Positions 18,727-54,347 of a stretch of 64,000 nt of DNA are shown one piece after another (the first letter of the stretch is position 1; each line of letters begins with the position of its first letter). Both the position numbers and the translations under genes were made by a program. The notes beneath the pieces were generated by a model. The model did not search any database, was not told the origin of the DNA, and saw nothing but the letters and a program-made list of their open reading frames with translations. The DNA comes from Macrostomum lignano (taxonomy: Eukaryota). Location: the NCBI GenBank assembly GCA_002269645.1, contig NIVC01000390.1:124001-188000 (forward strand), given 5' to 3'.

Positions 18727-19892
18727 TGAGTCTAATTTCTTGGAAACGAAATCTAATTAAACAAAATATTTAAAATATACCATTAGAACCCTAGAATAAA
18801 TTCACGTACATAATTATTACAGCATAAAGAATAGCATTTGATTTTACTTAAGTTTAATTAAAGAAACACAATCGCTTCAAATTCATAATTATCAAACCAT
18901 TAAAAAACCAAAAAATAAATCATTATATATTTTTTAAATATACACGATCAATCTAGTATAAATAGGAGCAGAGTTTGAGGAGAAGAGACCAACTCGTTCA
19001 CTTGCTATAAGCTTAAAAACGTGTTCACTGAAAATCGTTCTCAGATTCATAAGGTATCATGCAAATCATTTTGTAGTAAGAAGTGCTAAGAAGTATTCGG
19101 AGAAACTCGCTAAAGGAATCAGGAGTATATGCAAGGGAGTACATGCATTAGAAGTACATGCTAAAAGCAAACGCCGTGACCCTCTAATCTCGGTAACGCC
19201 CAGACTGGAGAATAGTATATAAACCAGTAAGCCCGCTCAGGCCAGAAGGAACATAGACGCTACCAGACTTATACAGAGACGCTACCAGATCTATGCCGAA
19301 GACACTACTAAAAGTATACTAAGAACGCTACCAGAACACTACCAGTACGCTACTAAGAACGCAAACCAGAACGCTACTAAGAACGCTATCAGAACGCTAC
19401 CAGAACGCTACAAGAACGCTACCAGAACGCTACCAGTACGTTACTAAGAACGCTACCAGAACGCTACCAGAACGCTACCAGAACGCTACCAGAACGCTAC
19501 TAAGAATGCTACCAGAACGCTACCAGAACGCTACCAGAACTCTACCAGAACGCTACCAGAACGCTACCAGAACGCTACTAAGAACGCTACCAGAACGCTA
19601 CCAGAACGCCACTAAGAACGCTACCAGAACGCTACCCAGCTTATACTAAGGCAGAAGTAACCCTAGGACAACTTAGTGGTTTACAGTGGAATTTAGATTA
19701 CCCATACGACAAACCTTTGGTGGCAGCTTTTAGAATTCGAAAAAGAGAGAAGTAAGGCCCTAGCACAGCTTGGTGGCACCAGTGTGAGTAACATTAAGAG
19801 ATGGAGGCAAACACTTTATCACAACTTTGGTGGCTCAGCGGTGGGATATTGTTAAGAGGGAAGCCTCTTACGCATATGTGTCACGGGTCTCA
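18727..19892 (+). mobile_element. Solo LTR C of the same gypsy lineage as elements A and B
   Basis: TGAG...CTCA ends with candidate TSD AATA; TATA box GTATAAATAGG near 18955; shared GTGACCCTCT, CCGCTCAGGC and ACGCTACC blocks; PBS-repeat array at 19660-19875. Exact ends are less certain than the identity. Confidence 0.75.
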
Positions 19893-31766: not shown

Positions 31767-33665
31767 GTCTTTTAGAGTAGTTATACATTAACAGATTCTT
31801 GAATTGAATGCTATATTTCTAGATATAATTTTAATTTCCTCTAAATAAAATACAACCAATTAAAATGCAACACTGCAAAGGCAGCAGCAATGGCAAGGCC
31901 TAATATTAATATAGCTTAAAGTATAGCTCAAGACACTTCCCTCACAGTCAAAACACAAGTGGGCCTAACTTTGTAATGTGATGTTAGACCTTTGACAATA
32001 AAGAAGCAGAAATAGACCTAAAAATAATAAATAATATTGGCAATAATTAATAGATTTAATTATAGGCCCCTAGGCCTAATCAATGCAATTATATAATAAT
32101 ATTAATTAATAATTATTGTTGCAAATATTAGACTACTTTTAGGTAGGCCTTTGCACATCAGCACATGGCCTAAATCCTAATTATAAGTATAAATAGGCTG
32201 TAGTATACTTTACTAATAGCCTAGTATGGCCGTGTAGGAGGGGTAATTAAGCTAAGTTGGGAATCCTACAATTGCCCCCAAGTTGTGGTAGTGCTCTAAG
32301 GTTAAAAACTTTATCCTAATAGCTGACACCAAGTTGTTGTAGGTAATTCTTATGCTTATTCATAATTTCACTGCTGCTACCAAGTTGTACTGGGGTGAAA
32401 TTTGCTATAATTCTAGAATTTCATAAGATTAGCCATCAGATTTGTTATAAACTACTAAAATATGGTGTCACGGAATTAAGATTATGGGCTTTCACATAAG
32501 CATGGATCGCCCTGGTAGTGCACAGTGCCCGAGCGGCAAGACACTGGTTAGCTAGGGGAGAGAGGGTGACTAAGTCCTAAAGCAGTGCCCTTCAATGGAT
32601 CAAGGTTGCCCGAATGCCCGGTGAATTTCAGTTTCCTCTTATGGATTTGCTCTTGTCATATACAACTTTCCATTGGCTGTTCAGTTCAAATGGTTCTATT
32701 GGGATATTTCTCCCTCTCCAATGGGCTCTCTATGCCTTTACTGTTCATGGTTCCGCTATTGGTTTTTAGACTGATCGTCTTAAGCTTTTGGTAATTTCTA
32801 CCTAGCCAATGAGCATTTGCTCTTTATTCTTGACAAATAAGGAAGGCTTAAGTAAAATTCGCTTATTCAGTTTGTTAGGCAGATAGCGTTGAACCAAAAA
32901 CTCGGTTGCCTCTCTGGGCGCTGAATTCACGTCTATTTATACTAACCAAAAAGAGGGGGAGGGGGAGGAAGAACGTATTCAAACAAATATCTACCAAAAA
33001 TGCAGTCACTAACAAAAATGGCGGGGATTCAAAATAATCCCTTTCTCACTAGGTCTATTATAGGCCTACTATAATAATGGTATTGATAATTGATAATAAT
33101 TGATAATAATAAACTGATAATAATATATATAATAAATTATAATAAATAATAAATAATATATAAATTGATAATAATATAAAATGTAATTATACTCCTTAAT
33201 TTTTTGGCCCTATTGGAAATATAGAGAGCTTGCGTACACAGCAGCCATCCACCCAGTGTTTTAATTGCATGCACAGTAGCCAGCAGATTGGCAAATAGTG
33301 AATTGCAAATTGGACCTTTTCCCTCAAATCTGCACTTTGTTACTTATTGAACTTTTTAAATAATTTATTACTTGTTTTATCCCATGTTACCCATGTATAA
33401 TGCAATCTCAAATTAAGATGCAGCTGTTGTGCAAGCAATTAAAACACTGGGTGGACGGCTATTGTGCATGTAAGCTCTTTGTTTTAAATCAGTGTTAACC
33501 CTATTCATTAGAGCAAAAATTTAAGTTTAAGTATATAGATAATTAGATCCTTGACATTTAGCTACACAATATTATATTAGGCCTATAGGAACATATTTTC
33601 ATTGTTTATTAGCTTTATCTAGGCTTAACTATTTTTATTAGCTTTCTTATTTTTTTTAATATAAG
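31767..33665 (+). repeat. 1.9-kb genomic flank X, duplicated at 41837-43735 (offset 10070)
   Basis: Near-identical copies; about 4 substitutions noticed (e.g. CATGG/CGTGG, GCTTATTCAG/GCTTTTTTTG). Confidence 0.92.
32233..33048 (-). mobile_element. Solo LTR D (same lineage, older) inside flank X; second copy at 42303-43118
   Basis: Minus-strand GTATAAATAGAC TATA box, CCGCTCGGGC block and PBS-repeat array with 51,51,51,57-bp spacing. TSD not resolved, so ends are approximate. Confidence 0.7.
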
Positions 33666-34531
33666 TGAGACAGGCATTAATAATAGCTCTAATACTTTTA
33701 AATTTTACTCGTTTTATGTTTGCCTTTCTTAGAAAAACCTTTATTCAAATCTGCGCGAAATATTTGTTTGAATGTTGTGGTTTGCAAAAATATTTCTGCA
33801 ATTATTATTTTGTTTAAACTATAACGAATTTTGGGTATAAATAGACACGCTGAGCAGACTTGAGGAAGCAACCGTTTGCTGCCTCTCGGTTTTCGATAAG
33901 CAAATTTAGTTCGTTCTAAATATTGAAATCGCTTAAAGACTTAATCATTTCTTAGAGTATAAGAACCCCAATTGGGAGTATCAGAAACCGCTACAAGCGA
34001 GAAACCGCCTCAGGGCAGTAAATTGTAAATTCGCCTCAGGGCAGGAGAACCGCCTCATAACGAGAGAAGATCGCCTCAGGGCAGAGAAAGAGCATAAGCT
34101 GTGACCCTCTGATCCAGGGAACGCCCAGGACTGAGAGAATAATATTAGGGGAAGCATAGGAATAGAATAGACAGTGCTATTAGACCGCTCAGGCTAGAAA
34201 GTACAATAGAAGTACATACGCTACCAATAGAAGTACATACGCTACCGATAGAAGTACATGCGCTACCAGTAGAAAGACAATTAATAACCAGTAGAATTAT
34301 TAAGGAGAAATAGCTTTATTACAACTTTGGGTGGCATTTAGGATTCTCAGTGTACAGGGAAGAGCACTGTGACAACTTGGTTACAGCGGTAGGATTTTGT
34401 ATTGTACGGGAAACCCCTAGCACAACTTGGTGACATAACGGTGGAATTCTTATAGAGAGCCAAAAGGCCTGTAACAACTTTGGTGGCAGCTAGTAAGGCT
34501 AGCAAAAGGAATAATTAAGAGCCCTACGACA
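33666..34531 (+). repeat. Element A 5' LTR
   Basis: TG..CA ends, preceded by TAAG; TATA box GGTATAAATAG near 33835; followed by the PBS. Confidence 0.9.
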
Positions 34532-34536
34532 GCTTT

Positions 34537-34547
34537 TGGTGGCAGCG
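34537..34547 (+). promoter_or_regulatory. Element A primer-binding site, 11-nt match to the tRNA-Leu(AAG/TAG) 3' end
   Basis: TGGTGGCAGCG lies 5 nt after the LTR end. Confidence 0.8.
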
Positions 34548-34661
34548 TAAAGGATCAGAGAAACGGCGCGAATTAGATCAGAGAAACGGCGAGATTTAGA
34601 TCAGAGAAACGGCAAAAACCTTAGAAGACTAGAGAAATAGCAGAACCTGACAAGATCAGAG

Positions 34662-35687
34662 ATGGCCAACGCAAATGATGCGATTGCGATGCTAGCTGAA
34701 GAGCTAAGAAACAGGTTAGAGTTAGGACCACAAAGGCATGTGAAAATTCAGAAATTCACGCCAGGTCAAGATATTAGGATCTGGTTGACTGCCTTCGACC
34801 AGCGCTGTGAAGCTGAGGGTATCGAAGAGGATAACCGGAAGCAAGAGCTTCTCGCGAACCTCGACCTGGCTACTGCATTCGCAGCAGTTCAGCGTTTGAA
34901 CCTCCCAGATGATCTGGAGTACGAAGAATTTAAAGAAAGACTTGTAGAACGCTTTGGCAGAATTGGCAGTTCAGCAGAGTTTAGGGAAGAATTTAGAGGC
35001 CGAATGCAAGGCAGAAATGAGTTAGTAGAATCGTACACCGATTGTCTAATTGAGCTAGCTTCGCGAGCCTTCCCAAACATGACTGTGGAACAGCGGGAAG
35101 AGGAGATCGTGGAACAGTTCATCAAGGGTGTGAGAGTTCCACCTGAAACCCGCGAGAAACTGATCTTCGCTCAGCCAGCTAATCTGCAGGAAGCCAGAAG
35201 AATGCTGAGGAGAATGGAAGCAGCCTGGAACATGTCACGTAGGAATTCAGGCATGAGAGTAGCTAAGAGCGAGGAAGAACAAGAACAGCAGAGGAAGGCT
35301 GAACAAGAAAGACTGGAAGAGATCATTAGGAAGCAGAAGTTCGAGATTGAACAGCAGAAGAGAGCTTTGCAGGAGCTAAGAGAGGAGAAGATGCAGAATA
35401 ATCAGCAGCAGTTTTCGCAAAATTATTCGTACGCTCAGGCAGCCAGGCAGTATCCACAGAGATACCAGCCCCAGCAGCCGCAGCCCGTTCCGCCACAGTA
35501 TGGCAATGGAGCGCAGGCGCGACAGCAAATGTTCGCCCGGCAGCAGCACCCAAACCAGGGTCAGCCGAGACAACAGTCGCAGACTTGCTATAACTGCGGG
35601 AAGATTGGCCACATTGCAAAGCAGTGCAGGAGTGCCAAGCAGAACGCTCCGCAGATGCAGAACCGCTCGAATAACCAGGGAAACTGA
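34662..35687 (+). CDS. gag: Element A Gag with CCHC zinc knuckle
   Basis: CYNCGKIGHIAKQC; the ORF ends in slippery site GGGAAAC-TGA. Confidence 0.93.
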   Translation: MANANDAIAMLAEELRNRLELGPQRHVKIQKFTPGQDIRIWLTAFDQRCEAEGIEEDNRKQELLANLDLATAFAAVQRLNLPDDLEYEEFKERLVERFGRIGSSAEFREEFRGRMQGRNELVESYTDCLIELASRAFPNMTVEQREEEIVEQFIKGVRVPPETREKLIFAQPANLQEARRMLRRMEAAWNMSRRNSGMRVAKSEEEQEQQRKAEQERLEEIIRKQKFEIEQQKRALQELREEKMQNNQQQFSQNYSYAQAARQYPQRYQPQQPQPVPPQYGNGAQARQQMFARQQHPNQGQPRQQSQTCYNCGKIGHIAKQCRSAKQNAPQMQNRSNNQGN

Positions 35688-38600
35688 GAAGCGAGGGCCG
35701 AATAACGAGGCCACGTCCCTCTAGCGAAATCCAGAGCAAAATTCAGGCCTCTGAATTTGTAAATAATGCATACAAAGTTAATAAGCAGTACAAGTACAAA
35801 TCATGCGAAAATTATAATAAGTTTAGAAAACCCAACAAAAAACATGCGAATGCACATACAGTACCGAATGTAAATACTACGCGTGCACCTGATTGCTTAC
35901 CCAAGAAAAGTACTCCGAAGCCAGAAGAGTACGTCAAGCTGAATGAAAGTGCAGAAGAAGAGACAAGTTTAGATGCCGGCACAGAGAAGAAAGGCCGAGA
36001 AGCAGTCATTGACGGAAAGATCCGCAAGCAGAATATTCGCTTTCTGTTAGACACAGGAGCCGGTCGTAACTTTCTAAGTAAAAGTACTTGGAGAAGAGTA
36101 TGTAGAGAACAAGAGATCAGGCCATCTGATCAAAGAGTGACCACATTCGATGGATCGATTGTGCGAATCGAAGGAGAAGTGACAATAAAGATAATGTTCG
36201 GAGAAGTAGAAATTGTGACCGACTTCCTGCTGTGCAACCATGAGTGTGATGATATCCTAGGAATGGATTTCTTTATGAACTTTTGCAAGAGTATGAGTTT
36301 TGACAAAGGAATGATGATTTTAAAAACTGGAGTTTGCATTCCGATGCAGTTTACTAAATTGCCGGTACGAGTGTGCCGAGTCTACTGTCACGACAAGGTA
36401 GTTGTGCCAGCTAATAGTGCTTTAAGAATACCAGTCAAACTAGCTAAACGAGCTGAAATGAACTTCGGTACGCCAATGATGATTGAGACCACCAAAGGAC
36501 ATATCTCAGTAAAAGATGACACACTGGATATGGTTCCAACCTTATTAACGATGAGTAATGGAACTGGTGTGGTAGAAGTGATCAATAGGCAGAATAACGA
36601 CGTAGTGATTAGGAAATCAGCAATGGTAGGCATTGCCAAACCATTAAAAGCCGAAGAACTGACGTACTTCGTTACCAAGAATGACACCGGACAAGTTAAA
36701 TCCGCGAAATGCGCTGAAACTGCTGATACTGATGAATGGATTCAGGAGATTAACATCTCAGATGAGCTATCATCAGAGCAGAAAGAAAAGGTAGTCGAGC
36801 TGCTGAAAGAGAATAGGGAAGCATTCTCGCAGACAAGCCAGGAGATGGGCCTCACTCATCTAGTGACCCACGAAATCTCGCTGAAGGATACGACGCCAGT
36901 CAGAATACCTACTCGCAGAATACCACCACATCTGCAGAAGCAAGTAGACGAACAGTTAGACGATATGCTCGCTAAAAATTTAATAAGGCCGTGCTATAGC
37001 ACTTATTCGACGCCATTAGTAATAGTGCCTAAGAAAGATGGAACTATTAGGATTGTCAGCGATTTCAGAGTCTTGAACTCTCGAGTTAACTACTATCCGT
37101 ATCCGTTGCCGAATATTCAGGAAACTTTCTCTCATCTAACGGGAAGTCAATATTTCAGTAGTTTAGACTTAAATTCAGGTTATTGGCAGGTACCAATTAA
37201 GGAAGAGGATAAATTCATGACAGCATTTTCGACTTTGACTAGGGGACAGTTCGAGTATCAGGTCATGGCGCAGGGACTATCTAATGCACCTGGAACATTC
37301 CAGAGACTAATGAACCTAGTATTGATGGGGATTCAACATAAATTCGCCATGTCGTACATTGACGACATAGTAACTTACTCAACGAAATTTGAGGATCACC
37401 TGGATCACCTACGAGAAGTGTTCCAGAGACTAGTAACAGCCGGATTAAAATTAAGGCCGAAGAAATGTAATCTATTTCAAAAAGAGCTTAAATATCTAGG
37501 ACACATAGTTGGTAGAGAAGGAATTAAGACAGATCCAGCTAAGATAGAAGCAATTCAGTCATGGCCGACGCCTAAGGACGTTAAAGAATTAAGAAGCTTC
37601 CTAGGTCTATGTAACTATTACTGTAGGTTCGTGAAGAATTACGCGGAAGCAGCGCACCCGCTCTTCCAGGCTCCAGCTAACTAAGAAGGGAATTCAGAAT
37701 TTTAGGGAGAAATGGACTAAGAGTCATGATGAAGCCTTTGCGCTACTAAAGCAGAAGATGACATCAACAGAAGTTTTAGCATACCCAGAGTTCACTGACA
37801 ATGAAGAAGTTCGAATGGTGCTTGACACCGACGCGAGTGATGACAGGATTGGGGCCTGCTTAGGTCAGATACAATCCGATGGAGTTGAAAGGCCCATCGC
37901 GTACTTTAGCAGAGCCATGAAGGAATCAGAAAAGAGGTATCCAATCACAAGAAAAGAATTGCTAGCATTAGTTGACGGAATGAAACACTTCCGATTCTAT
38001 CTTATCGGAAAGAGATTCCTGGCAAGAACAGATCATCGCGCTATCCTATGGCTACTTCGCCAGACTGAAGCGCAGGGAATCCTCGGTAGATGGATTGAGA
38101 GATTAAGTGAGTTTCAGTATGACATTGAACACCGCAGCGGTGCTAAACACACCAATGCAGACGGACTATCCAGACGACCCGCAGAAAGATTAGAAGATAA
38201 TCAGGAGACTAAGGCAGAAAAGTGCACTAAAGCTGAGATAGGTCCAGTACTTCCTACCGTTACGGTAAACCGAAGTCAGACCAATATCTCAAGCTGTAAG
38301 CACCAGAGCTGTCAGACTGATCCAATTAGAGAAGAAGTAGAAGACGATGAAGAGTACGAAGATGCAAGAGAATATTTCGAAGATGAAGAAGAAGAGTATG
38401 AGGACGCCAGCGATTACTTCGCTGATGATGAAGAAGTGTATGAGGATGCGGAAGAAAACGTTAGTGAGACCGCTTGTCGGAAACTCCTAACCGACTATCT
38501 CTTCGTCCCGCTTAAGAAGGAGCAGCTGACATCAGCTCAGCGTGACGACCCTTCTATGAGGACGCTGATAGCCTGGAAGGAGCAGAGTATCCGAGAGCCG

Positions 38601-40208
38601 AAATTACCAAAGGATGCAACTAGAGAGTTGAAGCAGATGTTAAAGTTCTATAAGCAGATGAAGCTAGAAGACGAGTTATTGACCATAGACGAAGACGGGA
38701 CACAGAAGGTCGTGTTGCCAGAGAACATAGAGAAAAAAGTATTCCGAGAGTTGCATGACAGTCCTCTCTCAGGTCACCTAGGTCGTGATAAAACACTGCA
38801 ACATGTGCGCGATCGATTTTGGCGACCAGGACTAGCAACTGCAGTAGAGAAGTATATTTCGGAATGTATTCCTTGTTTAGAGAGTAAGGCAGGAAATAAG
38901 GTGAAGGCGCCAGTGCAGTCCTTTCCAATATGCGAACCGTTTCATAGGATCCATATTGACCTGATTGGGCCGATCTCAAAAGAGAGTCGAAGAGGTCATC
39001 GCTACGTACTAACAGTAGTAGATAGCACTACTCGGTTCCCGTTTGCGTTCCCAGTGCGAAATCAGAAATCGGATACAGTGATTAAGATCATACAAGAAAG
39101 AATCTTTAGCGAATACGGACAATGCCAGTGGATCCACACTGACAATGGCAAGACATTCGTCAGCCGTCAGTTCCAAGCATTTTGTAGGATGTATGGCATC
39201 AAGCATACATGCACCACACCGTATCACGCACAAAGTAACGGACTAGTCGAAAGATTCAATAAACAAATAAAGTCAATAGTAACTTGTCTAGTAGAGAAAG
39301 ATCATTCCGACTGGGATTTGCTAATTCCCGCAGCTCTGGTAGCTGTGCGCACTAGTGTGAACCAGACCACCGGATTCACGCCGCACTACCTGCTATTTGG
39401 TAGGGAGGCAGATCTTAGGATAGACAGTATTATTCGAAGGCCAAAGCAGTATCACGATTATCCGAGCTATGTGCTAAACCATGCTGAAAGGCTCGAAGAA
39501 GCACAGAAACTCGTGCAGAAGAAGCTAGAGAAGGTAAAGGACCGTAGAGAGGAGGACAATGCTGAGAACAAGCCACCGAAGCATGTACCGGTTGGATGCC
39601 TCGCATTGATTAACAATCCGCAATTACACAGTGAAGAAAGCCATAAATTTCACCGCAAGAAAAGAGCAGCATTCAGAGTCCTTGCGAGACTTTCCGAAAC
39701 AGTATTTCGAGTACAGCGAGAAATAGACGGAGTAAGGATTGGCGAGAAGATGCTCGTACATCGAAACAACCTCACTCCAGTACCCAACTCGCAAATAGAT
39801 TTGCTGAATGAACCAAATAAAGAGACGGAACCTACAAATAGGGGAAGGCAGAGAGAACAACAGAAAAAGAGAGAGCCGAAAAATAAGGGAAGGCAACAAA
39901 TTAGTAAGAAAAATCATTTAGAGCCAATAATAGAAACTGACAGTTCGGAAGACGAAAGAATTCAGTGGAGAGCAAGAGAGATCGAGCCAATTGAGGAAGA
40001 AGTTGAGCAAGAGGAAATTGAGCAGAATGAGATAGAAGATGAGTCAACAGACAGTGAAAGAACTGAGTTAGCTGAGGAAGATGACGCATTAGAGATAGGT
40101 GAGAATGAAAGAGCCGAACAAAGACATCAATATAATTTGAGACCCCGAGAGAACTCAGTCGCAACAGGCTTTGTTCCCCGGAGGCGATATTCTCATTACC
40201 GAAAGTAA
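35678..40208 (+). pseudogene. pol: Element A Pol (-1 frame): protease, RT, RNase H, integrase; broken by a 7-bp insertion at 37670-37676
   Basis: The -1 frame is open from GGGAAAC through LLDTGAG and YIDD. Comparison with B shows an extra GCTCCAG in HPLFQ|LTKKG. RNase H DTDAS and integrase HHCC plus HIDLIGP/TDNG/VERFN motifs are in the second frame. Confidence 0.92.
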
Positions 40209-40605
40209 TGAAGCCGAATCCATGTAAAAATGTGTAAATAGACTCAATATAAAACTCATAAAAAGTAAAAATCATAAAATTTATAAAAATACAAAAATAT
40301 TAAATTTGCATATACAGTATTAAATAAAAATGTTATGCGCATTACTAACAGTAGAGTATAGAGAATTGTGCAGGTATTGTTCGAAACTCGTTCCGCATAA
40401 AAATCCTAGCAACGCTTAGTAACGGTGTGAGCCAATGAGCGAGCTCGTTAGAAATTTGCTAAACCCCCTCTCGTGCGAACACGAAGATGCGGTCCAGTTT
40501 TTTCAGATATACAATTGAACTCCCTGCAGCTCCATAGACCCGTCGATCACACCTCTCCAAGTCAATCTTGAGTTAATACCGCAAGAATATATATTGCGAG
40601 CTAGA

Positions 40606-41643
40606 ATGGACGACGACTTAGATAATTTCTTAAAAGATTTGCTGGACGACTCCATGGAGGAATTAGCCGTCGCCGCCGCAGCAGACCAGCCAGCTGAACA
40701 GCCAGCTGAGCCTCCAGCGCAGCCTCCAGCGCCGCCAGTTCGACCTCCAGACCAGCCGGCTGAGCAGCCAGCTGAGCAGCCAGCCGAGCCGCCAGCTGAG
40801 TCGCCAGTACCATCAGCTCGGCCGCCAGCTTCATCAGCAAATCAGCCTGCAGCGACGTCCGCGCCATCAACCAGCCGATCGGCGCCTGACATTGAGGAGG
40901 CGCCATTGCGAGCTCCGACGAGACCAAGAGCCCTGTCAGGAACAGGCAAGCGACCGCCAGCCGCTGAACAATCATCAATTCCAGCCAAGAGGGCCGCTCT
41001 TCTGGATGCTCAAGCAAAAGCGCCAATCAAGTCTTTGGTCGTAAGACCATGCGCCGGAGAAGAGCGGCGCACCCTTCAGCTGGCCGCGCCTCCACAGCAG
41101 TCAGCAATGAGACGTCAGCCGAGACGTCCACCACAGCCGCCGCGCCATTCGTCGCCAAGACGTCTGCCGCAGCCGTCGAACCAGCCGCAGCCGCCGAGTC
41201 GGCCGCCACAGCAGCAGCAGCCGCCTCCGCCACATCAGCCAGCAACACCCAGGCAGCCACTGCAGCCTGTGCCTAATCCGCCGCTACAGCCAAGGCGAGA
41301 GTACCATGAAACGGCGCTAGCCCTTATCGACATGCACGGCGTTACGCTCGAACGAGTTGTGCACGGCATCAGGGTTTATCTGGAAAGGATAGCCCACCTG
41401 CGCCTCGACCAGGCGTTGCCACAGCGGGCTTACCTGTGGCCAAGCCTGAGGCAGCTGAGAACCCGACTTTCGCGAGAGGAAGCCGTCGCTCTGCTGCGAT
41501 ACGCCATCGACCGATTTCGAGACGATCTGGATGCCAGCCGACAGCCAATTCAGAGACAGCTTGTCAACATTGAGGTGAGATGGGTTTTCACCCAGCTCGG
41601 ATGGCTCGAGTACAGAGACCTCCCGCGAAATTGCTACTTCTAA
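40606..41643 (+). CDS. Element A ORF3, 345-aa non-env accessory protein
   Basis: ATG at 40606; homologous to ORF3 of element B in three separate blocks. Confidence 0.85.
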   Translation: MDDDLDNFLKDLLDDSMEELAVAAAADQPAEQPAEPPAQPPAPPVRPPDQPAEQPAEQPAEPPAESPVPSARPPASSANQPAATSAPSTSRSAPDIEEAPLRAPTRPRALSGTGKRPPAAEQSSIPAKRAALLDAQAKAPIKSLVVRPCAGEERRTLQLAAPPQQSAMRRQPRRPPQPPRHSSPRRLPQPSNQPQPPSRPPQQQQPPPPHQPATPRQPLQPVPNPPLQPRREYHETALALIDMHGVTLERVVHGIRVYLERIAHLRLDQALPQRAYLWPSLRQLRTRLSREEAVALLRYAIDRFRDDLDASRQPIQRQLVNIEVRWVFTQLGWLEYRDLPRNCYF

Positions 41644-43735: not shown

Positions 43736-44601
43736 TGAGACAGGCATTAATAATAGCTCTAATACTTTTAAATTTTACTCGTTTTATGTTTGCCTTTCTT
43801 AGAAAAACCTTTATTCAAATCTGCGCGAAATATTTGTTTGAATGTTGTGGTTTGCAAAAATATTTCTGCAATTATTATTTTGTTTAAACTATAACGAATT
43901 TTGGGTATAAATAGACACGCTGAGCAGACTTGAGGAAGCAACCGTTTGCTGCCTCTCGGTTTTCGATAAGCAAATTTAGTTCGTTCTAAATATTGAAATC
44001 GCTTAAAGACTTAATCATTTCTTAGAGTATAAGAACCCCAATTGGGAGTATCAGAAACCGCTACAAGCGAGAAACCGCCTCAGGGCAGTAAATTGTAAAT
44101 TCGCCTCAGGGCAGGAGAACCGCCTCATAACGAGAGAAGATCGCCTCAGGGCAGAGAAAGAGCATAAGCTGTGACCCTCTGATCCAGGGAACGCCCAGGA
44201 CTGAGAGAATAATATTAGGGGAAGCATAGGAATAGAATAGACAGTGCTATTAGACCGCTCAGGCTAGAAAGTACAATAGAAGTACATACGCTACCAATAG
44301 AAGTACATACGCTACCGATAGAAGTACATGCGCTACCAGTAGAAAGACAATTAATAACCAGTAGAATTATTAAGGAGAAATAGCTTTATTACAACTTTGG
44401 GTGGCATTTAGGATTCTCAGTGTACAGGGAAGAGCACTGTGACAACTTGGTTACAGCGGTAGGATTTTGTATTGTACGGGAAACCCCTAGCACAACTTGG
44501 TGACATAACGGTGGAATTCTTATAGAGAGCCAAAAGGCCTGTAACAACTTTGGTGGCAGCTAGTAAGGCTAGCAAAAGGAATAATTAAGAGCCCTACGAC
44601 A
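43736..44601 (+). repeat. Element A 3' LTR, flanked by TAAG on both sides
   Basis: Copy of 33666-34531. Confidence 0.9.
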
Positions 44602-45196
44602 TAAGCTTTTAAAACCTATAGATTTTGAACCCACTGAATTCTAATCCCTGAAACTATTTTTGCAATTTTTTTAGTTTGAAGTCAATATGATTTATACTCA
44701 AACAAAAATTTAATAATTAGGCCCTAAGATAGAGCCTTAGAGTTGAATTTGAAAAATGGGATAAAATGATATTAAATTGTTTTTTGCTTTAATGTTTTAA
44801 GATTTCTATTGATATTGTCAACTAAGGTAAATATTATCAAAATAGGCATAAGCCTGACACTGACAGCTGACTAAATTTTTTCTTATATTATCCCTTCTTT
44901 TTATTTCATCTCTTTTCTCTAATCTCTTTTTTGTTCTTTGCTTTTTCTTTGTCATAGACTTTGTTTTCTCTTCTCTTTTCCTTTGTCTTTTCTTTTTTCT
45001 AATCTCTTCTCTTTATTCTTACTCTTATATCTCCTCATTCTTCTCTCTTTTCTTCTCTCTCTTCTCTTCTCTCTGCTATTTACTTTTTCCCTTCTCTTCT
45101 CCCTTTCTCCTCCCTTTTTTCTTCTTATCTCTACTTTCTTATCTTTTATCTTTCCTATCTATTCTCCCTTTTCCTCATATCTCTCATCTTCCATCT

Positions 45197-46292: not shown

Positions 46293-47124
46293 TGTGACAG
46301 GCCTTTTGGCTCTGTCTTTCTAAACTTCTAACTATTAGTGTTTATTAAATATCCTACGAGCTGCCACCAAAGTTGTGGTAGGGGTATTCCCGTACGGTAC
46401 AAAATCCTACCGCTGTAACCAAAGTTGTGACAAGGCTTACTTCTGTCCCTACAAATTATCCCTCTATTGCCACCAAGTTGTAACAGGGGTTATTTCTGTT
46501 TGCCAACTACAGTTATCCTGATTATACTTGTTTTTACTCCCTAACTATTTCTTAGAATTTCATTTAAATATTTCTGGTAGCGTTCTTAGTAGCGTTTCTG
46601 GTAGCGTTCTGGTAGCTTATGGCCTGCTTTCTGGTAGCGTTCTGGTAGCTTATGGCCTGAGCGGTCTAGTACTGATATATGTATTAGTGAATAGTCCTAA
46701 TCGGGCGTTCACCGAGACTAGAGGGTCACGGCGCCTCTCTTGGTATATCTCCAAGAATTAGTCCCAATTCCCTTCTCTTAGCAAATTTCTTAGAATCGTT
46801 TCACAGGTTTTGCAAATAAATAAGTCGCTATTTAGCTCAAAGACTTTGAAATGGTTTAGATTGAACTGCTTATTCTGTTCGCAATTATTTGCTCACGAGT
46901 AAAAGACAGTTAGAGTATATTTGTCGCGAAACCGCTCCTATATATAGTGATTTTCCCCACATACAATTAAAACAAAAAAATAATTCTCCAATTTATTTCG
47001 CGCATTAAAACAAACTATTATTTGGCGTTCGCGTAGATTCAGTTTCTAAGAAAGATTCGAATATACAGTTATTACATTGAAAGAACATTCGAGTATACTA
47101 TGATAAAGGCATAGCACTAGTACA
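46293..47124 (-). repeat. Element B 3' LTR
   Basis: TGTACTA...TGTCACA on the minus strand. Confidence 0.93.
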
Positions 47125-47410: not shown

Positions 47411-48286
47411 TCAGATAAACATGCAGGGCTCCGGGAGGTCGCGATAATAGGGCCAGCCGACTTGAGCGAAAAACCATCGGTACTCTTCGTCGAGGACCGT
47501 CAGCGCTGGCGGCGGGTTGGCTCTTATAGCTCGCTGGAGGCGATAGGCGACGTCCTGGAGAACAGCGACAGCTTCCTGGTAACTGAATTGATCCCTCAGA
47601 AACTTCAGGTGTGTCCAAATTTGCGAGCATTGGGGGTAGCGCTGTCGGCTGTCGGATCGGTGGTACGCTACTTTCAGTGCGTATTGCTCAATGTGGAAGC
47701 GTAGCTTTTCCACCTCTGCTCCGCGAGTCTCCACAAGTTCTCGGACGATGCGATGAAAATCTCTCTGCGAATTCGATTGCTGCTGGCTCGGCTGTAGTGC
47801 TGATGGCTGGCTAGACTGCTGCGCTGATTGCAGGCTCGGCTGCAGCGCTGACTGCTGCGCTGATTGCAGGCTCGGCTGCGACGCTGGCTGCTGAGCTGGC
47901 GGTGTCGCAGCTGTCGATTTCTTCTGCCGTGGTGCCGGGGTCTTTCTCGATGATGGGGCAGCTGGCGGTGACACCAACTGCTGCGTTCGGCTTGATGTCG
48001 ACGATCCTGGCGTGGCCTTGACAACATAGGAGCGCACGGGCGCAGCTGCCTGTGCTGCCACCAGGGCGGCGCGCTTCTGCTCGGGGCCTTCGACCCTCAT
48101 TTGGCGGCAAGGCGATGAAGCTGGCGATGATGTTCTTGGCCGTTTGCTGGATACACCAGGCGCCTTTGGACGTGTTGCACATCGAAGCGGTGCCTCATTT
48201 TCATCGGTGTTGGGCGCTGGCTGGGGCTCCATATCGTCTGACAGATTGCCAATTAACTCGTCCAAGATATCAATAGAGTTGTTCAT
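47411..48286 (-). CDS. Element B ORF3, 291-aa non-env accessory protein
   Basis: Open ORF downstream of pol, homologous to A ORF3; TATAAATA about 85 bp upstream. Confidence 0.88.
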   Translation of the reverse strand: MNNSIDILDELIGNLSDDMEPQPAPNTDENEAPLRCATRPKAPGVSSKRPRTSSPASSPCRQMRVEGPEQKRAALVAAQAAAPVRSYVVKATPGSSTSSRTQQLVSPPAAPSSRKTPAPRQKKSTAATPPAQQPASQPSLQSAQQSALQPSLQSAQQSSQPSALQPSQQQSNSQRDFHRIVRELVETRGAEVEKLRFHIEQYALKVAYHRSDSRQRYPQCSQIWTHLKFLRDQFSYQEAVAVLQDVAYRLQRAIRANPPPALTVLDEEYRWFFAQVGWPYYRDLPEPCMFI

Positions 48287-48685
48287 TTTGATTTCTCTGC
48301 GAATGGCTCTTAGAATAGAAAGGAAGCTAGCAGTGAGCTATGGGATCTGTGGGGCCTGCGGGTGCTCGTATTTATAGGCTGGCGGGCCGAAAAACTGGAC
48401 CTCTTCGAAGCACTCCCCTCGCGCGTGGGGCGGGGCATGCCAGATTTGACAGATTTGACAACTAAATTTTTATGGATTTTCTATTTCTTTTTATAACTTT
48501 TTTATTTTTTGATAGATTTTCTTGAGTAAAGTATCAAATTAAAGATCGCATTTTGTAGATTAATATGGTATTTACAGATTCGCTCTATGTACAATATGTT
48601 AAATTTTATAAGCAGATAAGTAATTCTAATACGGAATTTTAACTATTTAACACTGTTTCTTATAGGAAATTGCTTACGTCATGAT

Positions 48686-51600
48686 TTAAGGTGCTAAATA
48701 TTTCGCGTAGCGCCTTCGGGGCACAAATCCTGTCGCGCCTTCTCTTTCTCTCCTTCGCTGAGTCATCCTAAAGTTATACCTATTCTCTGGCTGAACTCGT
48801 TCCTCCTCTAACTCTAATGCTCCTTCTTCTTCTTCTGATGGCTCATCTGAGTCAGTCGCTCTCTCTGTATTTTCACTGTTTACTTCTTCATTTCCTTCGT
48901 TTTCACTCTGCGAATTCGGATCTGCGAATACTCTCCATTGAATTCTGTTTTCTTCGTCTGAGCTTTCCTCCTCTAAAATTTGAACTTCTGGAATTCTAAC
49001 TTCTTTTTGTCTATGGCAAATTCTTTTCTTCGGCTTCGGCTGTTCTTTCTTCTTAGTTGGCACTGGTGCTGGTTTTAAATTATTATTAATTTCCTCTGGT
49101 AAATCAATTTCGGATTTCGGCACTGGAGTCAGATTATTTCTATGTACTAATAGTTTTTCTCCGCTCCTTTCGCCATTGATTTCTCTTTGCACACGGAAAA
49201 CTGTATCAGATATCTTCGCAAGAACTCGATAGGCTGCTCTTTTCTTTCGATGAAATTTGTGGCTCTCCTCTTGGTGAAGTTGAGGATTGTTGATGAGAGC
49301 GAGACAGCCAACTGGCACATTTTTAGGCTGACGATTCTCAACTTCGTCCTCTTGCCTTTTCTCTCGCACCTTTTCGAGTTGTCTTCGCACAATTGCTTTT
49401 GTCTCCTCGATTCTCTTCGCATGATCCAGCACATAGCTAGGATAGTCTCGGTATAGTCTTGGCCTTTTCACAATGCTATCTATTGGCAAATCTGCTTCTC
49501 TCCCGAATAGTAAGTAGTGTGGTGTGAACCCAGTAGTTTGATTAACACTGGTTCGCACAGCTACCAGAGCGGCGGGTATGAGCAGATCCCAATCTGAATG
49601 ATCCTTTTCAATCAAACAGGTTACAATCGATTTAATTTGCTTGTTAAATCTTTCGACAAGCCCGTTACTCTGAGCATGGTAAGGCGTAGTGCAAGTATGC
49701 TTAATGCCGTATAGGGTACAGAATGCCTGAAATTGGTGACTTACAAAAGTCTTGCCATTATCAGTGTGTATCCATTGACACTGGCCATACTCGCTGAAAA
49801 TTCTCTCTTGTATCGTTTTGATAACAGTCGCGGATTTCTGATTCCGAACCGGAAAAGCGAATGGGAACTTTGTTGTACTATCTACGACAGTAAGTACATA
49901 TCGGTGTCCTCTTCTGCTTTCCTTTGATATTGGACCGATCAAATCTATGTGCAGCCGATGAAATGGCTCGCATATCGGAAAGGTCTGCACCGGTGCTCGT
50001 ACTTTATTTCCGCTTTTACTTTCCAGACACGGGATGCATTCTGCGATGTACTTTTCAACTGCAGTCACTAACCCCGGCCTCCAGAATCGGTCTCGGACTC
50101 GCTGTAGCGTCTTGTCCCGACCTAGGTGGCCTGCTAGCGGACTGTCATGCAGCTCTTTGAATACATCTTTCTCAATCCTTTCTGGCAATACTACTTTCCG
50201 TTTACCGTCTTCACTGACTGTCAGCATTTCATCTTCGATTTTCATCTGCTCGTAGAACTTAACCATCTTCTTCAACTCTCCGGATGCATTTTCTGGCAAC
50301 TTCGGCTCACGCACTTTCTTCTGCTTCCAGTCCATCAAGGTTCTTATAGAAGGATCAGCATGCTGCGCTGAAGTCAGCTGCTCTTTCTTCAATGGAACCG
50401 AGAGGTAATCTGTCAGAAGCTTTCTGCACACTGTCTCTTCCTCTTCGAAATAGTCTCTTGCATCTTCATAGATGTCATCATTATCTTCGAACTGATCACT
50501 GGCATCTTCGTATTCATCATCTGCGAATTCGTCTTCGGAATCTGATTCATACTCTTCTGTGAAGTCGGTCTGGCAACTCTGATCTTTCACGCTGTTAGTC
50601 ACGACTTGTTTCACAGCGCTGGTTTCTATTGTCATCTTAGGAATTTCGGCCTCATTCTCTTTGATCTTAGCATCTTTCTGTTCAACTGGTGGTTCCGAGG
50701 GTCGCCGTGACAATCCATCTGCGTTGGAATGTTTGGCTCCACTGCGGTGCTCAATATCGTATTGAAACTCACTCAGTCTTTCAATCCATCTTCCGAGAAT
50801 TCCTTGGGCTTCGGTCTGGCGCAGTAACCATAGAATTGCCTTGTGGTCTGTGCGGGCCAGAAACCTTTTGCCAATTAGGTAAAATCGGAAGTGTTTCATG
50901 CCATCTACTAGCGCTAATAGCTCTTTTCTGGTAATCGGATATCTTTTCTCAGACTCTTTCATTGCTCTGCTGAAGTAAGCAATGGGTCTTTCAACCCCGT
51001 CCGATTGTATTTGACCCAGGCAAGCACCAATTCGGTCTTCGCTTGCGTCGGTGTCTAATACCATTCGAACATTCTCGTTCTCTGAGAATTCTGGGTACGC
51101 GAGTACTTCGGTCGATGTCATTCTCTGCTTCAACTGCTGGAAAGCCTCGTCATGTTTCTTGGTCCACTTTTCCCTAAAGTTTTGAATACCTTTCTTAGTT
51201 AATTGAAATAGCGGATGCGCTGCCTCTGCGTAATTCTTTACAAATCTGCAGTAGTAGTTACACAACCCCAAGAAGCTTCGCAGTTCTTTGACCTCTTTCG
51301 GCGTAGGCCATGACTGTATCGCTTCGATCTTAGCTGGGTCTGTTCTAATCCCTTCTCTTCCTACGATATGCCCTAAGTACTTTAGCTCTTTCTGAAACAA
51401 GTTGCACTTTTTTGGTCTTAATTTTAGTCCTGCTGAGATTAGTCTTTGAAATACTTCTTGCAGATGACCGAGATGATCTTCGAATTTCTCTGAGTATGTC
51501 ACAATATCATCTATGTACGACATTGCGAATTTGTGCTGTATTCCCATCAGCACCAAATTCATGAGTCTCTGGAATGTACCAGGAGCGTTAGACAAGCCCT

Positions 51601-53197: not shown

Positions 53198-54192
53198 TGC
53201 TGCTTCTGGTAGTCCATCACTCGCTGACCGTTTGGCCTAGCGCTCTGGCAATTCCTCGCCATGTGGCCAAGCTTCCCGCAATTGTAGCAGGCTCGAGGCT
53301 GCTGCTGTTGCTGTGGCTGCCTGTTGAACTGAGGCTGACCGCGCCATACTGGCTGCTGCTGCTGCTGCTGCTGCGGCCGATATCTCGGCTGCTGCGGCGG
53401 TCCAGCGACCTGAGCGTACGTTTGATATTGATTCTGCGGATGATACTGCTGACGGCTAGCTCTCTTCTCTTCCATCAGCTCCTCAATCGCCTTCTTCTGT
53501 TGCTCTAACTCTGCTCTCTGCTTCTTGATGATGTCCTCAAGCTTCTCCTGATCTGCCTTCTGCTCACTCTCGCCTTCGCCTTTGGCCATTCTCATGTTGA
53601 AATTCTTGTGAGACATGTTCCACGCAGCCTCCATCCTTCTTAGCATTCTTCTAGCCTCTTGTAAATTGCCTGGCTGCGCAAAGATTAGCTTCTCACGGGT
53701 CTCTGACGGAATTCTGATTCCCTTGATGAATTGCTCAACAATTTCTTCTTCCCTTTGCTCAACCGTCATATTCGGAAATGCACGCGATGCCAGCTCGATC
53801 AAACAGTCTGCGAAAGTCTCTACAGGCTCATTTCTGCCTTGCATTCTTCCACGAAACTCCTCTCTGAATTCTGCGGAACTACCGATTCTTCCGAATCGCT
53901 CAATCAGTCGCTCTTTGAACTCTTCGTATTCAAGATCCTCGGGCAGATTTAGGCGCTGTACCGCTGCGAATGCAGTGGACAGGTCCAGATTAGCTAGCAA
54001 TTCCTGCTTCCTATGTTCCTCATCTATCCCTTCTACTTCACAGCGCTGATCGAAGGCTGTTAGCCAGATCCGAATGTCTTGCGTAGGTGTGAATTTCTGA
54101 ATCTTAACGTGTCTCATCGGCCCTATCTCTAGTCGGTTTCGCAATTCTTCTGCCAGCATGGCGATGGCATCATTAGCCTGATTCTGATTCAT
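53188..54192 (-). CDS. gag: Element B Gag with CCHC zinc knuckle
   Basis: CYNCGKLGHMARNC; highly similar to A Gag. Confidence 0.95.
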   Translation of the reverse strand: MNQNQANDAIAMLAEELRNRLEIGPMRHVKIQKFTPTQDIRIWLTAFDQRCEVEGIDEEHRKQELLANLDLSTAFAAVQRLNLPEDLEYEEFKERLIERFGRIGSSAEFREEFRGRMQGRNEPVETFADCLIELASRAFPNMTVEQREEEIVEQFIKGIRIPSETREKLIFAQPGNLQEARRMLRRMEAAWNMSHKNFNMRMAKGEGESEQKADQEKLEDIIKKQRAELEQQKKAIEELMEEKRASRQQYHPQNQYQTYAQVAGPPQQPRYRPQQQQQQQPVWRGQPQFNRQPQQQQQPRACYNCGKLGHMARNCQSARPNGQRVMDYQKQQGN

Positions 54193-54327
54193 CTTCTCTC
54201 TATGAAAAACTTTTCAAATTATTCTTCGGAATTCTTCTGAATCTAGTTTTGAGAGTTCGCGCCGTTTCTCTAATCCTTATCGCTGCCACCAGCTGTGACA
54301 GGCCTTTTGGCTCTGTCTTTCTGAACA

Positions 54328-54345
54328 ATCCCACCGCTGCCACCA
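54328..54345 (-). promoter_or_regulatory. Element B primer-binding site, perfect 18-nt complement of the tRNA-Leu(AAG) 3' end
   Basis: TGGTGGCAGCGGTGGGAT lies 2 nt after the LTR end and complements ...ATCCCACCGCTGCCA-CCA (tRNA recalled from the metazoan consensus). Confidence 0.88.
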
Positions 54346-54347
54346 GC

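Follow-up and report, generated by a model that had tools for sequence, protein, structure and literature searches.

Organisation of elements A and B

The window, the whole stretch of 64,000 nucleotides of Macrostomum lignano DNA that was analysed, contains two long terminal repeat (LTR) retrotransposons, element A on the forward and element B on the reverse strand, together with two LTR fragments, C and D. Element A is bounded by a terminal direct repeat of 2765 bp (upstream copy 31767..34531, +) that showed 99.86% identity to 41837-44601 by self-BLAST. The 5' edge of this repeat has no canonical LTR start, its end is ACA, and a polypurine-like tract lies within it at 32948-32973. The LTR proper probably begins after this tract, and the initial 1.2 kb or so of the repeat looks like internal 3' sequence, with fragment D nested there. 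The coding region (34662..41643, +) comprises gag with a CCHC knuckle (34662-35687), RT (36137-37684) and RNase H-integrase (37758-40208), each identified with Pfam, followed by a third ORF without a Pfam match (40594-41643). The pol gene is split, since RT and RNase H-integrase occupy two ORFs. The M. lignano gag P0001 was found to be 68% identical. A gag search for further copies of element A yielded two matches, and both pol searches returned only the cluster of element B and one family of 47-50% identity; element A therefore counts as a single observation.

Element B has a 5' LTR at 54348..55180 (-), with the form TGT...ACA, and a 3' LTR at 46293..47124 (-). The LTRs, of 834 bp, are 99.9% identical to each other and are flanked by a 4-bp target-site duplication, ATCT. 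The polypurine tract GAGGAGGAAAG precedes the 3' LTR, the junction reading GAGGAGGAAAG-T-TGT, and on the 5' side the LTR end reads ACA-GC-TGGTGGCAGCGGTGGGATT. The coding region (47411..54192, -) holds gag (53188-54192) and an intact pol of 1439 aa (protease-RT-RNase H-integrase, 48686-53005), both recognised by Pfam, and a third ORF (47411-48286).

Both elements have the attributes of Ty3/gypsy (Metaviridae): gag carries a CCHC knuckle in each, and the order of pol domains is protease-RT-RNase H-integrase. Paired LTRs are present, near-identical and with the 4-bp duplication in element B, and as a repeat with a non-canonical 5' edge in element A. The primer-binding site (PBS) lies 0-5 nt from the end of the 5' LTR and in element B a polypurine tract occurs before the 3' LTR, the polypurine-like tract of element A being inside the repeat.

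Arrays of LTR/PBS junctions

The U5 end of element A is occupied by five modules of approximately 51 bp, each composed of an LTR-type end (...ACA), a linker of 2-5 nt and a core related to a tRNA-Leu PBS. The ACA ends lie at 34323, 34374, 34424, 34476 and 34531, with spacings of 51, 50, 52 and 55 bp; these positions in the original prediction proved exact, and its claim that each module tip is of the LTR type was borne out. Module A1 (34324..34374, +) has the linker AC, a PBS-like core at 34326-34345 that matches the tRNA complement at 14 of 19 positions, and a spacer with ACA at its end. The core of module A2 (34375..34424, +; core 34377-34396) is TGGTTACAGCGGTAGGATT, with 16/19 matches, and A2 is the ortholog of module B2 of element B, the cores being 95% and the spacers 86% identical. 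The spacer of module A3 (34425..34476, +; core 34427-34448) ends in a tip, AGAGCCAAAAGGCCTGTAACA, common to the LTR tip of element B. The core of module A4 (34477..34531, +; core 34479-34500) is 86% identical to that of B3, and its spacer constitutes the current U5 tip of element A, the LTR ending with the ACA at 34531.

The working PBS of element A, A5 (34532..34555, +; core 34534-34555), consists of the linker GC, TTT and then TGGTGGCAGCGTAAAGGAT, which provides 11 contiguous nucleotides complementary to the 3' end of tRNA-Leu; the complete junction reads ACA-GCTTT-TGGTGGCAGCG. It is orthologous to module B5 of element B and to module E4 of a related element, L001, and the shared leader AGAGAAACGGCGCGAA follows directly. 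A 23-bp tandem repeat of 2.7 copies (34553..34613, +), detected by Tandem Repeats Finder, starts inside the last bases of this PBS. Since the LTR repeat ends at 34531 and 44601, modules A1-A4 recur at 44394..44601 (+), where the downstream copy of the LTR ends, and the fifth core alone lies just outside the LTR, as had been proposed.

The same architecture had been predicted for B, C and D, and arrays were located in all three. That of element B (54272-54533, -) places modules B1 (54481-54533), B2 (54429-54480) and B3 (54348-54428) at the U5 end of the 5' LTR, these three units being repeated in the 3' LTR at 46293-46478. The spacer of B3 contains the sequence AATAAA. A newly born module, B4 (54294..54347, -), lies outside the LTR and comprises GC, an exact complement of tRNA-Leu, GTTC and a perfect 29-nt copy of the LTR tip. 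Its PBS, TGGTGGCAGCGGTGGGATT at 54327-54345, is exact over 19 nt, and the similarity of the B3 and B4 spacers corresponds to z=20.8. Beyond it, B5 (54272..54293, -) consists of GC and an inherited imperfect PBS, TGGTGGCAGCGATAAGGATT; the leader AGAGAAACGGCGCGAA comes next. Just outside its LTR, element B thus bears a fresh 54-bp duplication of U5 tip plus PBS in which the perfect PBS is upstream and the imperfect PBS downstream, in the order LTR tip, GC-perfect PBS-GTTC-29 nt of identical LTR tip-GC-imperfect PBS-leader. The duplication junction is blunt (GGGATT|GTTC) and lacks diagnostic microhomology.

The nearest relative of the window copy of element B is L011, which has a single imperfect PBS only. 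The two are 99.4% identical internally and 96% identical in the LTR, and their array content is different; this recombinant background fits a particle containing two different RNAs. A simple in-register deletion was considered for the arrays of B and B' and rejected: the identical flanks enclose 134 nt in B and a different 47 nt in B', which indicates replacement at the level of modules.

Fragment C (19671..19874, +) contains four modules, the last of which, C4, adjoins the end of the fragment and matches the tRNA complement at 18 of 19 positions with a 2-nt insertion. No PBS follows its end, and C is accordingly a solo or 3' LTR. Fragment D (32233..32385, -) contains three modules and is present twice because it is nested in the repeat of element A, the second copy lying in the downstream repeat at 42303-42455 (-). 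Target-site duplications were sought at fragments C and D and none was found, so that their boundaries are defined by the ACA/GCA end alone.

Arrays occur in six LTR types: A, B/B', C, D, a further LTR in L007 (16041-16110) and L001, the last from an unrelated sequencing run (Logan assembly). Within each element both LTRs carry them, and they are also found on nine other contigs of the M. lignano assembly as well as in the independent Logan assembly. The L002 family, 47-50% identical, uses the same tRNA primer and has no regular array. One candidate for independent confirmation, L003, was discarded as the window itself, being 100% identical over 24 kb.

Composition of the modules

Alignment of the junctions of 16 modules gave the consensus AGAGCCCTRYNACA-(A/G)C-T(1-3)-TGGTGGCAGCGGT.GGATT. 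A junction profile, built from those same modules, recovers every one of them with E values of 1e-5 to 1e-8. Tandem Repeats Finder did not report the array, the similarity among its copies being below about 70%.

The spacers had been predicted to be unique and unrelated, a claim that fails: 27 of 189 spacer pairs were similar at p<=0.01 where 1.9 were expected, and the 3' halves share the consensus AGAGCCCTRYNACA of the U5 tip. Judged by their sequence, the spacers are diverged copies of this one tip. The possibility that they are simple diverged copies with no shared order had also been raised; diverged copies they are, and an order common to families is clear for a few modules only, namely A2/B2, the A4/B3 cores and A5/B5/E4. 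Elements A and B share the predicted unit, TGGTTACAGCGGTAGGATT+TTGTA..GTACGGGAA.ACCCCTA.CACA, and the predicted tip, AGAGCCAAAAGGCCTGT.ACA. Modules A2 and B2 are approximately 90% identical, compared with 73-77% for the coding DNA of the two elements, and the remaining LTR sequence is unalignable. This argues for constraint on, or recent exchange of, at least one internal module.

Allowing up to 3 mismatches, ACAACTTTGGTGGCAGC was matched 8 times, against 0.14 expected, and the 19-nt tRNA complement 5 times, against 0.00 expected. Beyond TGGTGGC, 8.9 of 12 positions of the non-working cores fit the tRNA complement, compared with 5.4 ± 1.3 in random sequence; the cores are hence closer to tRNA-Leu than random TGGTGGC-type motifs are. 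They are full-length PBS derivatives that agree with the tRNA-Leu-AAG 3' end at 13-18 of 19 positions, the matches being spread over all 19. Internal cores carry 1-6 mismatches, often with indels, and cores within one array are 57-86% identical; the initial 10 nt (TGGTGGCAGC) and the terminal GGATT are the best-kept positions of decayed cores. The mean match to the tRNA, counted inward from the LTR end, is 15.8, 15.4, 15.2 and 13.5 of 19, at most a weak age gradient in which only the outermost modules are clearly lower.

RNA folding of the A and B arrays gave z scores of +1.5 and -1.2, respectively, which is nothing special. No known RNA family was found by Rfam in 19000-56000, and ARAGORN identified no tRNA gene in the window or in the compared loci, which for M. 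lignano amount to roughly 220 kb.

Primer tRNA and rewriting of the PBS

The published human tRF-Leu-AAG is ATCCCACCGCTGCCACCA, its 22-mer being TCGAATCCCACCGCTGCCACCA. Module B4 and the PBS of copies L004, L007 and L010 are exact complements (19/19) of its 3' end. The array repeats are, on the evidence of this pairing, PBS-derived and complementary to a tRNA-Leu of the AAG type, which upholds the tRNA-Leu origin that had been proposed for them. The rewritten PBS and the human sequence together predict that M. lignano tRNA-Leu ends in ...AATCCCACCGCTGCCACCA.

Eight independent insertions of the B family were compared, six with 4-bp target-site duplications (the window copy and five others) and two in the form of tandem dimers (L004 and L011). 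At one and the same position the PBS is perfect in L004, L007 and L010, imperfect in L005, L006 and L011, and a one-base variant in L009, while the window copy carries the perfect and the imperfect allele in tandem. PBS states are therefore mixed among near-identical copies: each leader-proximal haplotype pair comprises one copy with a perfect and one with a non-perfect PBS, the copies being 2-4 substitutions per 2.5 kb apart. The difference between the perfect and imperfect forms is a block of 4-5 positions within the first 18 nt. Retroviruses and Ty elements template the PBS from their primer tRNA, of which plus-strand strong-stop DNA reproduces 18 nt, up to m1A58, and a block change within the first 18 nt is what such copying predicts. 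Mixed states of this kind mark a PBS that is rewritten from the primer tRNA. A second tRNA-Leu isodecoder was considered as the source of the imperfect PBS and rejected, since the versions in A, B, L009 and L001 diverge among themselves past nt 11-13.

The imperfect leader-proximal PBS is common to A, B and L001 although it is often rewritten to the perfect form. The LTR boundary falls at the same module in 8/8 B-family insertions, and no copy among them has its boundary at a different module of the same array. A shift of the boundary is accordingly deduced by comparison between families.

Origin of the array

We consider it fairly probable that modules arise by duplication of the LTR/PBS junction during reverse transcription, and that priming at the distal PBS then extends U5 so that old junctions enter the LTR. 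The repeat unit would be the element's own junction: the last 25-30 nt or so of U5, with the integrase-recognised end ...AGAGCCCTRYNACA, a linker of 2-5 nt and a PBS of approximately 19 nt for tRNA-Leu (AAG-type). In a first step this junction would be duplicated around the PBS. The minus strand may read on for approximately 33 nt, entering U5 of a co-packaged RNA that has not been primed, and then switch to the 3' end of plus-strand strong-stop DNA bearing a fresh tRNA-templated PBS. In a later cycle, priming at the distal, leader-proximal PBS would shift the end of U5 downstream, with the result that the older junction or junctions are copied into both LTRs. Modules inside the LTR would cease to prime, probably being without function from then on, and would decay to roughly 13-18/19 matches, with turnover by the swap, loss or gain of whole modules.

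Element A represents the extended state: its working PBS is the B5 ortholog and four modules lie inside both LTRs. With a just-born module outside the LTR in B and four inside in A, the array fits a product of past U5 extensions, and to that extent the original description of an ordered record of such extensions stands; a CRISPR-like record of unique spacers it is not. The blunt junction in element B is equally compatible with a duplication made by the host, through end-joining or through slippage in replication, that then underwent a single round of PBS rewriting. Also counting against the proposed origin are the LTR boundary, which sits at one and the same module throughout the B family, the high identity of A2 and B2, the absence of a clear age gradient along the arrays and, for element A, the single copy.

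That selection keeps the array in place, as spare priming/att sites making the LTR boundary movable, as extra docking sites for tRNA-Leu in primer capture or as sponges for PBS-directed repressors such as 3' tRNA fragments, seems unlikely, albeit with several observations to recommend it. Arrays persist in six LTR types whose LTRs are otherwise unalignable, A2/B2 is conserved above the coding sequence, TGGTGGCAGC and GGATT are the best-kept parts of decayed cores, and the imperfect leader-proximal PBS is retained in A, B and L001 despite frequent rewriting. Against these stand the single boundary used by all eight B-family copies, the lack of conserved RNA structure in the folded arrays of A and B, and the fact that U5-PBS regions are generally the best-conserved part of an LTR. 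Conservation of the period across unalignable LTRs had been taken to suggest selection; the architecture is indeed common to such families, but duplication and turnover of whole modules suffice to keep a period of approximately 50 bp, so that selection is not needed for it. The mismatches and indels of the internal cores would also make them poor decoys, since in reporters 3'-tRF sites with additional mismatches were weak or inactive targets (PMC12853362).

More speculatively, and in our estimation doubtfully, the array and the imperfect leader-proximal PBS could together be an adaptation against PBS-directed host silencing. If so, tRNA complementarity at the priming site of the element is held to only 11-13 nt, copies rewritten to a perfect 18-nt PBS are silenced dead ends, and mismatched PBS/att modules are kept in U5 as reserve junctions or docking sites for the primer tRNA, making the LTR boundary movable. 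Nature would then offer a retroelement that both tunes its single invariant sequence and multiplies it.

Ordinary tandem subrepeats, generated by slippage in host replication or by unequal crossing-over, unrelated to reverse transcription and including the PBS by chance, are improbable. Tandem subrepeats such as the AGAACGCTACC arrays and the 23-bp repeat of the leader are frequent in these LTRs, and the blunt junction without diagnostic microhomology in element B is compatible with such an origin. However, the unit is exactly LTR tip, linker and PBS, the array straddles the LTR boundary, and the B duplication is located in a recombinant element. Moreover, the tips in this duplication are identical over 29 nt, but the PBS copies differ by a block that distinguishes a tRNA-templated from an inherited allele.

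An artefact of repeat-rich long-read assembly is very improbable: the fresh duplication in B is known from one assembled locus only (L003 being the window), but arrays are found in both LTRs of each element, on the nine other contigs and in the independent Logan assembly, and the sequence around the PBS alleles is otherwise clean and collinear. A CRISPR-like or recorder array, with conserved repeats between spacers that are unique and were acquired independently, has a negligible probability. The original comparison extends only to a superficial repeat-spacer layout and a regular period of about 51 bp; the spacers are related to one another and to the LTR tip, the repeats are no more than 60-85% alike, the newest spacer (B4) is a verbatim copy of the preceding one (the B3 tip), and the host is a eukaryote without acquisition machinery.

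Comparison with known systems

In a search of the open literature, where matches were mostly acronym noise, no description of a natural multi-PBS array was found. Helenus and Cassandra (TRIMp3) carry within the LTR a sense copy of a tRNA-like or 5S-like gene with a pol III promoter (PMC10886601). The present arrays likewise place tRNA-related sequence within the LTR; unlike those elements they hold no more than the tRNA's final 19 nt as an antisense complement, in which ARAGORN and Rfam detect no tRNA-like fold. Targeting of the PBS by 3'-tRFs, described by the Schorn laboratory and shown in mouse only, employs the 18-22 nt 3' end of a tRNA as the guide for host repression (PMC12853362). As the 3' end of the priming tRNA also guides repression, PBS copies are potential 3'-tRF target sites; unlike the PBS targets of that pathway, the internal modules, known here at the level of DNA sequence, are mismatched. 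The persistence of an imperfect PBS under constant rewriting bears on the proposed host control of retroelements by PBS-directed tRNA fragments. Heat-inducible LTR elements and transgenesis are available in M. lignano (PMC12801592), which makes these predictions testable at the bench; the paper on its LTR elements is without mention of PBS, tRNA or tandem repeats (PMC12801592).

LTR annotation tools that expect one PBS just outside the LTR will misplace boundaries in families of this kind. Two cis sequences of a retroelement, the PBS and the LTR tip, are not free to vary, and the element of the textbooks has a single copy of either. Tandem subrepeats are familiar from retroviral and gypsy-like LTRs and 5' leaders as U3 enhancers or leader binding sites. 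The arrays resemble these in having head-to-tail units of tens of bp whose number varies between subfamilies, and differ in that the unit is the U5 tip plus PBS and straddles the LTR boundary. Textbook PBS templating is matched by the B-family flips between an imperfect and an exact tRNA complement, which fall within the first 18 nt and are independent of the flanking haplotype. Unlike the simple templating model, however, this is a natural polymorphism of a flatworm transposon, and the imperfect allele kept across A, B and L001 is not predicted by it.

The junctions in a row, the fresh duplication and the PBS polymorphism together indicate how U5 can grow and how the second strand transfer may fail when PBS and tRNA are mismatched. 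To our knowledge, such steps of reverse transcription have until now been studied mainly with engineered two-PBS vectors. Voronin and Pathak, in J Virol in 2004, reportedly engineered retroviral vectors with two primer-binding sites, either of which can start reverse transcription. Initiation at the downstream site is said to turn everything from there to R into U5, so that the upstream PBS enters the LTRs. Those vectors are laboratory constructs in which the two PBS lie far apart, whereas the arrays of M. lignano are natural, comprise 3-5 copies at a spacing of approximately 50 bp, each with an LTR tip of its own, and have been inherited across families.

Elements A and B

Two Ty3/gypsy elements, A and B, lie in the region. 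Each encodes a gag with a CCHC knuckle, a PR-RT-RH-IN pol and a third ORF; the third ORFs, located downstream of pol (A, 40594-41643, plus strand, 349 aa; B, 47411-48286, minus strand, 291 aa), gave no Pfam match. The pol proteins are 70% identical and the coding DNA 73-77%, and an M. lignano protein at NCBI matches the pol of B with 100% identity. B lies on the minus strand between LTRs (54348-55180 and 46293-47124) that are 99.9% identical, with TGT...ACA termini and a 4-bp target-site duplication, ATCT. Element A, known from a single copy, has plus-strand terminal repeats of 2765 bp (31767-34531 and 41837-44601, 99.86% identical).

The repeat of A exceeds an LTR. A polypurine-like tract, AAAAAGAGGGGGAGGGGGAGGAAGAA, lies inside it (32948-32973 and 43018-43043), and a pyrimidine run, not a polypurine tract, stands before the 3' copy of the repeat. 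The first ~1.2 kb (31767-32973 and 41837-43043) therefore looks like internal 3' sequence, which places A in a tandem int-LTR-int-LTR arrangement. The same arrangement occurs in the B family at L004 (1-332) and L011 (7738-24077), two of the comparison loci fetched from assembly GCA_002269645.1, where a polypurine tract and internal sequence stand immediately upstream of a '5' LTR'; the layout of L011 is LTR-int-LTR-int-LTR. The 3' flank of A (44602-44612) reads TAA-GCTTTT, and GCTTTT also occurs between the 5' LTR and the primer binding site (PBS); it may be the remnant of a further tandem unit, or a coincidence.

Elsewhere the window is rich in satellites (34-13138, 57925-62386; periods of 35/45, 26, 32, 34 and 73 bp, an (AGAC)n run and others), with a short TTAGGG-like stretch at 22181-22227. 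A 259-bp inverted repeat (17502-17760/17941-18199, 97% complementary, 180 nt apart) has a relative, ~80% identical, at 56732-57145 and may be a foldback or MITE-like element.

Structure of the array

The original prediction placed ACA ends at 34323, 34374, 34424, 34476 and 34531, and all five are exact. As the LTR of A ends at the last of these, modules 1-4 (each an LTR-type end, a linker of 2-5 nt and a tRNA-Leu PBS core) occur in each copy of the LTR; the fifth core (34534-34555) falls beyond the LTR end and is by position the PBS, as had been proposed. Arrays of the same build were found in B and, within provisional boundaries, in LTR fragments C (19671-19874) and D (32233-32385 and 42303-42455, nested within the A repeat). 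Motif counts were well above chance (8 matches against 0.14 expected; 5 against 0.00). The array was not reported by Tandem Repeats Finder because its copies are too diverged. On the other side of the PBS, a 23-bp tandem repeat, GATCAGAGAAACGGCGAGAATTA (2.7 copies, 34553-34613), begins within the final bases of A's working PBS, and is present as one copy in B; in element A, sequence on both flanks of the PBS is tandemly duplicated.

The spacers had been described as unique and the array as CRISPR-like; neither description holds. In local alignments of all spacer pairs against shuffles, 27 of 189 pairs were similar at p<=0.01 (1.9 expected), and junction-centred alignment gave a common consensus, AGAGCCCTRYNACA-(A/G)C-T(1-3)-TGGTGGCAGCGGT.GGATT. 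Judged by these alignments, the spacers are all diverged copies of the U5 tip, and this accounts for the integrase-substrate-like end on every one of them; the repeat unit is the complete LTR/PBS junction.

The non-working cores are copies of the PBS. All 17 align to the tRNA-Leu complement with 13-18 of 19 matches. Beyond the TGGTGGC start their agreement is 8.9 out of 12, where random sequence sharing that start reaches 5.4 +/- 1.3; the refuting condition set with the original prediction, repeats lying no nearer to tRNA-Leu than chance TGGTGGC motifs do, is thereby removed. For human tRNA-Leu-AAG, the published 3' fragment reads ATCCCACCGCTGCCACCA and the 22-mer TCGAATCCCACCGCTGCCACCA (PMC9161985, PMC12025293); core B4 (54327-54345), in the module just outside the 5' LTR of B, is its exact 19-nt complement.

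Distribution and orthology

Four modules lie immediately upstream of gag in L001, a related element found in a separate, unrelated run (Logan SRR28338157) whose gag shares 70% identity with that of A; their positions are given relative to gag. Two more occur in a further LTR fragment, in L007 (16041-16110). The L002 family (pol 47-50% identical) uses the same tRNA and has no regular array, only a single extra TGGTGGCAGCG ~200 bp inside the LTR. The array is therefore the mark of a single sub-lineage, which includes at least six LTR types.

In the non-coding sequence of A and B, BLAST aligns only the array, the PBS and the first leader bases (AGAGAAACGGCGCGAA in both). One-to-one orthology is clear for A2/B2 (core 95%, spacer 86% identical), for the cores of A4/B3 (86%), for the tip AGAGCCAAAAGGCCTGTMACA and for A5/B5/E4, that is, the working core of A, the leader-proximal PBS of B and their L001 counterpart; other pairings are ambiguous. 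A2/B2 are more conserved than the coding sequence, which suggests constraint or recent exchange.

Rewriting of the PBS

Eight independent B-family insertions were compared, six with their own 4-bp target-site duplication and two tandem dimers. In all, ...GGCCTGTCACA closes the LTR, and GC and a single PBS come next. This is the exact tRNA complement, TGGTGGCAGCGGTGGGATT, in L004, L007 and L010; an imperfect form, TGGTGGCAGCGATAAGGATT, in L005, L006 and L011; and a one-base variant of the latter, TGGTGGCAGCGGTAAGGATT, in L009. Window B carries perfect and imperfect forms in tandem. Over the adjacent 2.5 kb of internal sequence the copies form near-identical groups (2-5 differences), and every leader-proximal haplotype pair combines a perfect PBS with a non-perfect one. 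Point mutation cannot have produced a block of 4-5 changes, an indel among them, on three occasions. In the standard model, 18 nt of the primer tRNA are copied into plus-strand strong-stop DNA, which pairs with the genome-derived PBS in a heteroduplex that resolves either way; the flip, as read from these copies, is what this model predicts. Recurrent rewriting to one form would indirectly prove a host tRNA 3' end of ...ATCCCACCGCTGCCACCA, 18 nt shared with human tRNA-Leu-AAG; no tRNA gene was present in the window or any fetched sequence.

The imperfect leader-proximal PBS (an 11-13 nt match, then (G/A)TAA(A)GGAT; GCG[G/A]TAA[A]GGAT) is common to A, B and L001 (window 34534-34555 and 54272-54291; L001 919-939; also L009 8472-8491). 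In about half of the recent B copies the PBS has been rewritten to the perfect form, and simple 50:50 inheritance should have erased the imperfect one. Its survival implies either that trimming usually removes the mismatched end of the plus strand, or that copies with a perfect PBS have fewer descendants. Few mismatches are tolerated when 3' tRNA fragments mediate host repression (PMC12853362), and the latter alternative would fit such putative repression.

A fresh junction duplication

In window B the LTR tip is followed by GC-perfect PBS-GTTC-AGAAAGACAGAGCCAAAAGGCCTGTCACA-GC-imperfect PBS-leader. The 29 nt after GTTC repeat the LTR tip letter for letter (z = 20.8), and the preceding GTTC corresponds to GTTT of the LTR, so that the duplicated unit is 54 bp (~33 nt of U5, linker and PBS). 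What separates the two PBS copies is precisely the block that distinguishes the tRNA-derived from the inherited form. The duplication is known from one assembled locus, L003 being the window itself. Its closest relative, L011, shares 99.4% identity in the internal region and only 96% in the LTR, with a different module set and only the imperfect PBS; by this comparison window B (46293-55180) is a recombinant. In the route proposed here, two different RNAs share a particle; the minus strand would cross the PBS of the unprimed RNA, continue ~33 nt into its U5 and then switch to the free mismatched 3' end of plus-strand strong-stop DNA. An identical product would result from slippage or blunt end-joining by the host and a single subsequent round of PBS rewriting.

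AATAAA occurs in the long spacer of B3 (54380-54400, minus strand), and ~100 nt upstream of B1 (about 54615) there is a TATA-like TATTTAAAT. If these were used, the array would be mostly R, and U5 only the last ~33 nt, the length of the duplicated tip. We infer the host tRNA, transcription start, poly(A) site and priming site from sequence.

Growth, turnover and possible function

If the next cycle were primed at the distal PBS, everything upstream, the new module included, would become U5 and be copied to both LTRs, where modules would then decay. Element A, with the B5 ortholog as working site and four modules inside the LTR, has the state expected as the outcome of such priming. No clear age gradient in tRNA match was seen along the arrays, and none of the eight B-family insertions has its LTR boundary at another module. 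Where B and its B' sister copies have identical flanks, the module block between them is a different one (134 nt in B, 47 nt in B'); turnover is thus by whole modules, which keeps the ~50-bp period without selection.

Roles as decoys or spare sites are possible; the mismatched cores speak against an efficient decoy, and frequent use of spare sites is hard to square with the fixed boundary. The arrays of A and B gave no sign of a conserved RNA fold and no match to known RNA families. Just upstream of the array, the LTRs of A (34204-34274), B (54627-54705, 46572-46659) and C (19322-19636, 28 copies) carry (A)CGCTACC(A) tandem repeats. GCUACCA, which looks like the 3' acceptor end of the tRNA, could base-pair to UGGUGGC, where the PBS cores start, with one G-U pair; the repeats could be either U3 enhancer repeats or partners of the cores.

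Comparison with known systems

No natural example of repeated LTR-tip/PBS modules was found in open-access full text, and a recent study of M. lignano LTR elements makes no mention of PBS, tRNA or tandem repeats (PMC12801592). The components are already known, namely tRNA templating of the PBS, two-PBS vectors and LTR subrepeats; the inherited natural array and the intermediate in B appear to be new. In the engineered two-PBS retroviral vectors of Voronin and Pathak (2004), distal priming reportedly turns upstream sequence into U5, and the same extension of U5 by distal priming would be expected for the arrays of A and B.
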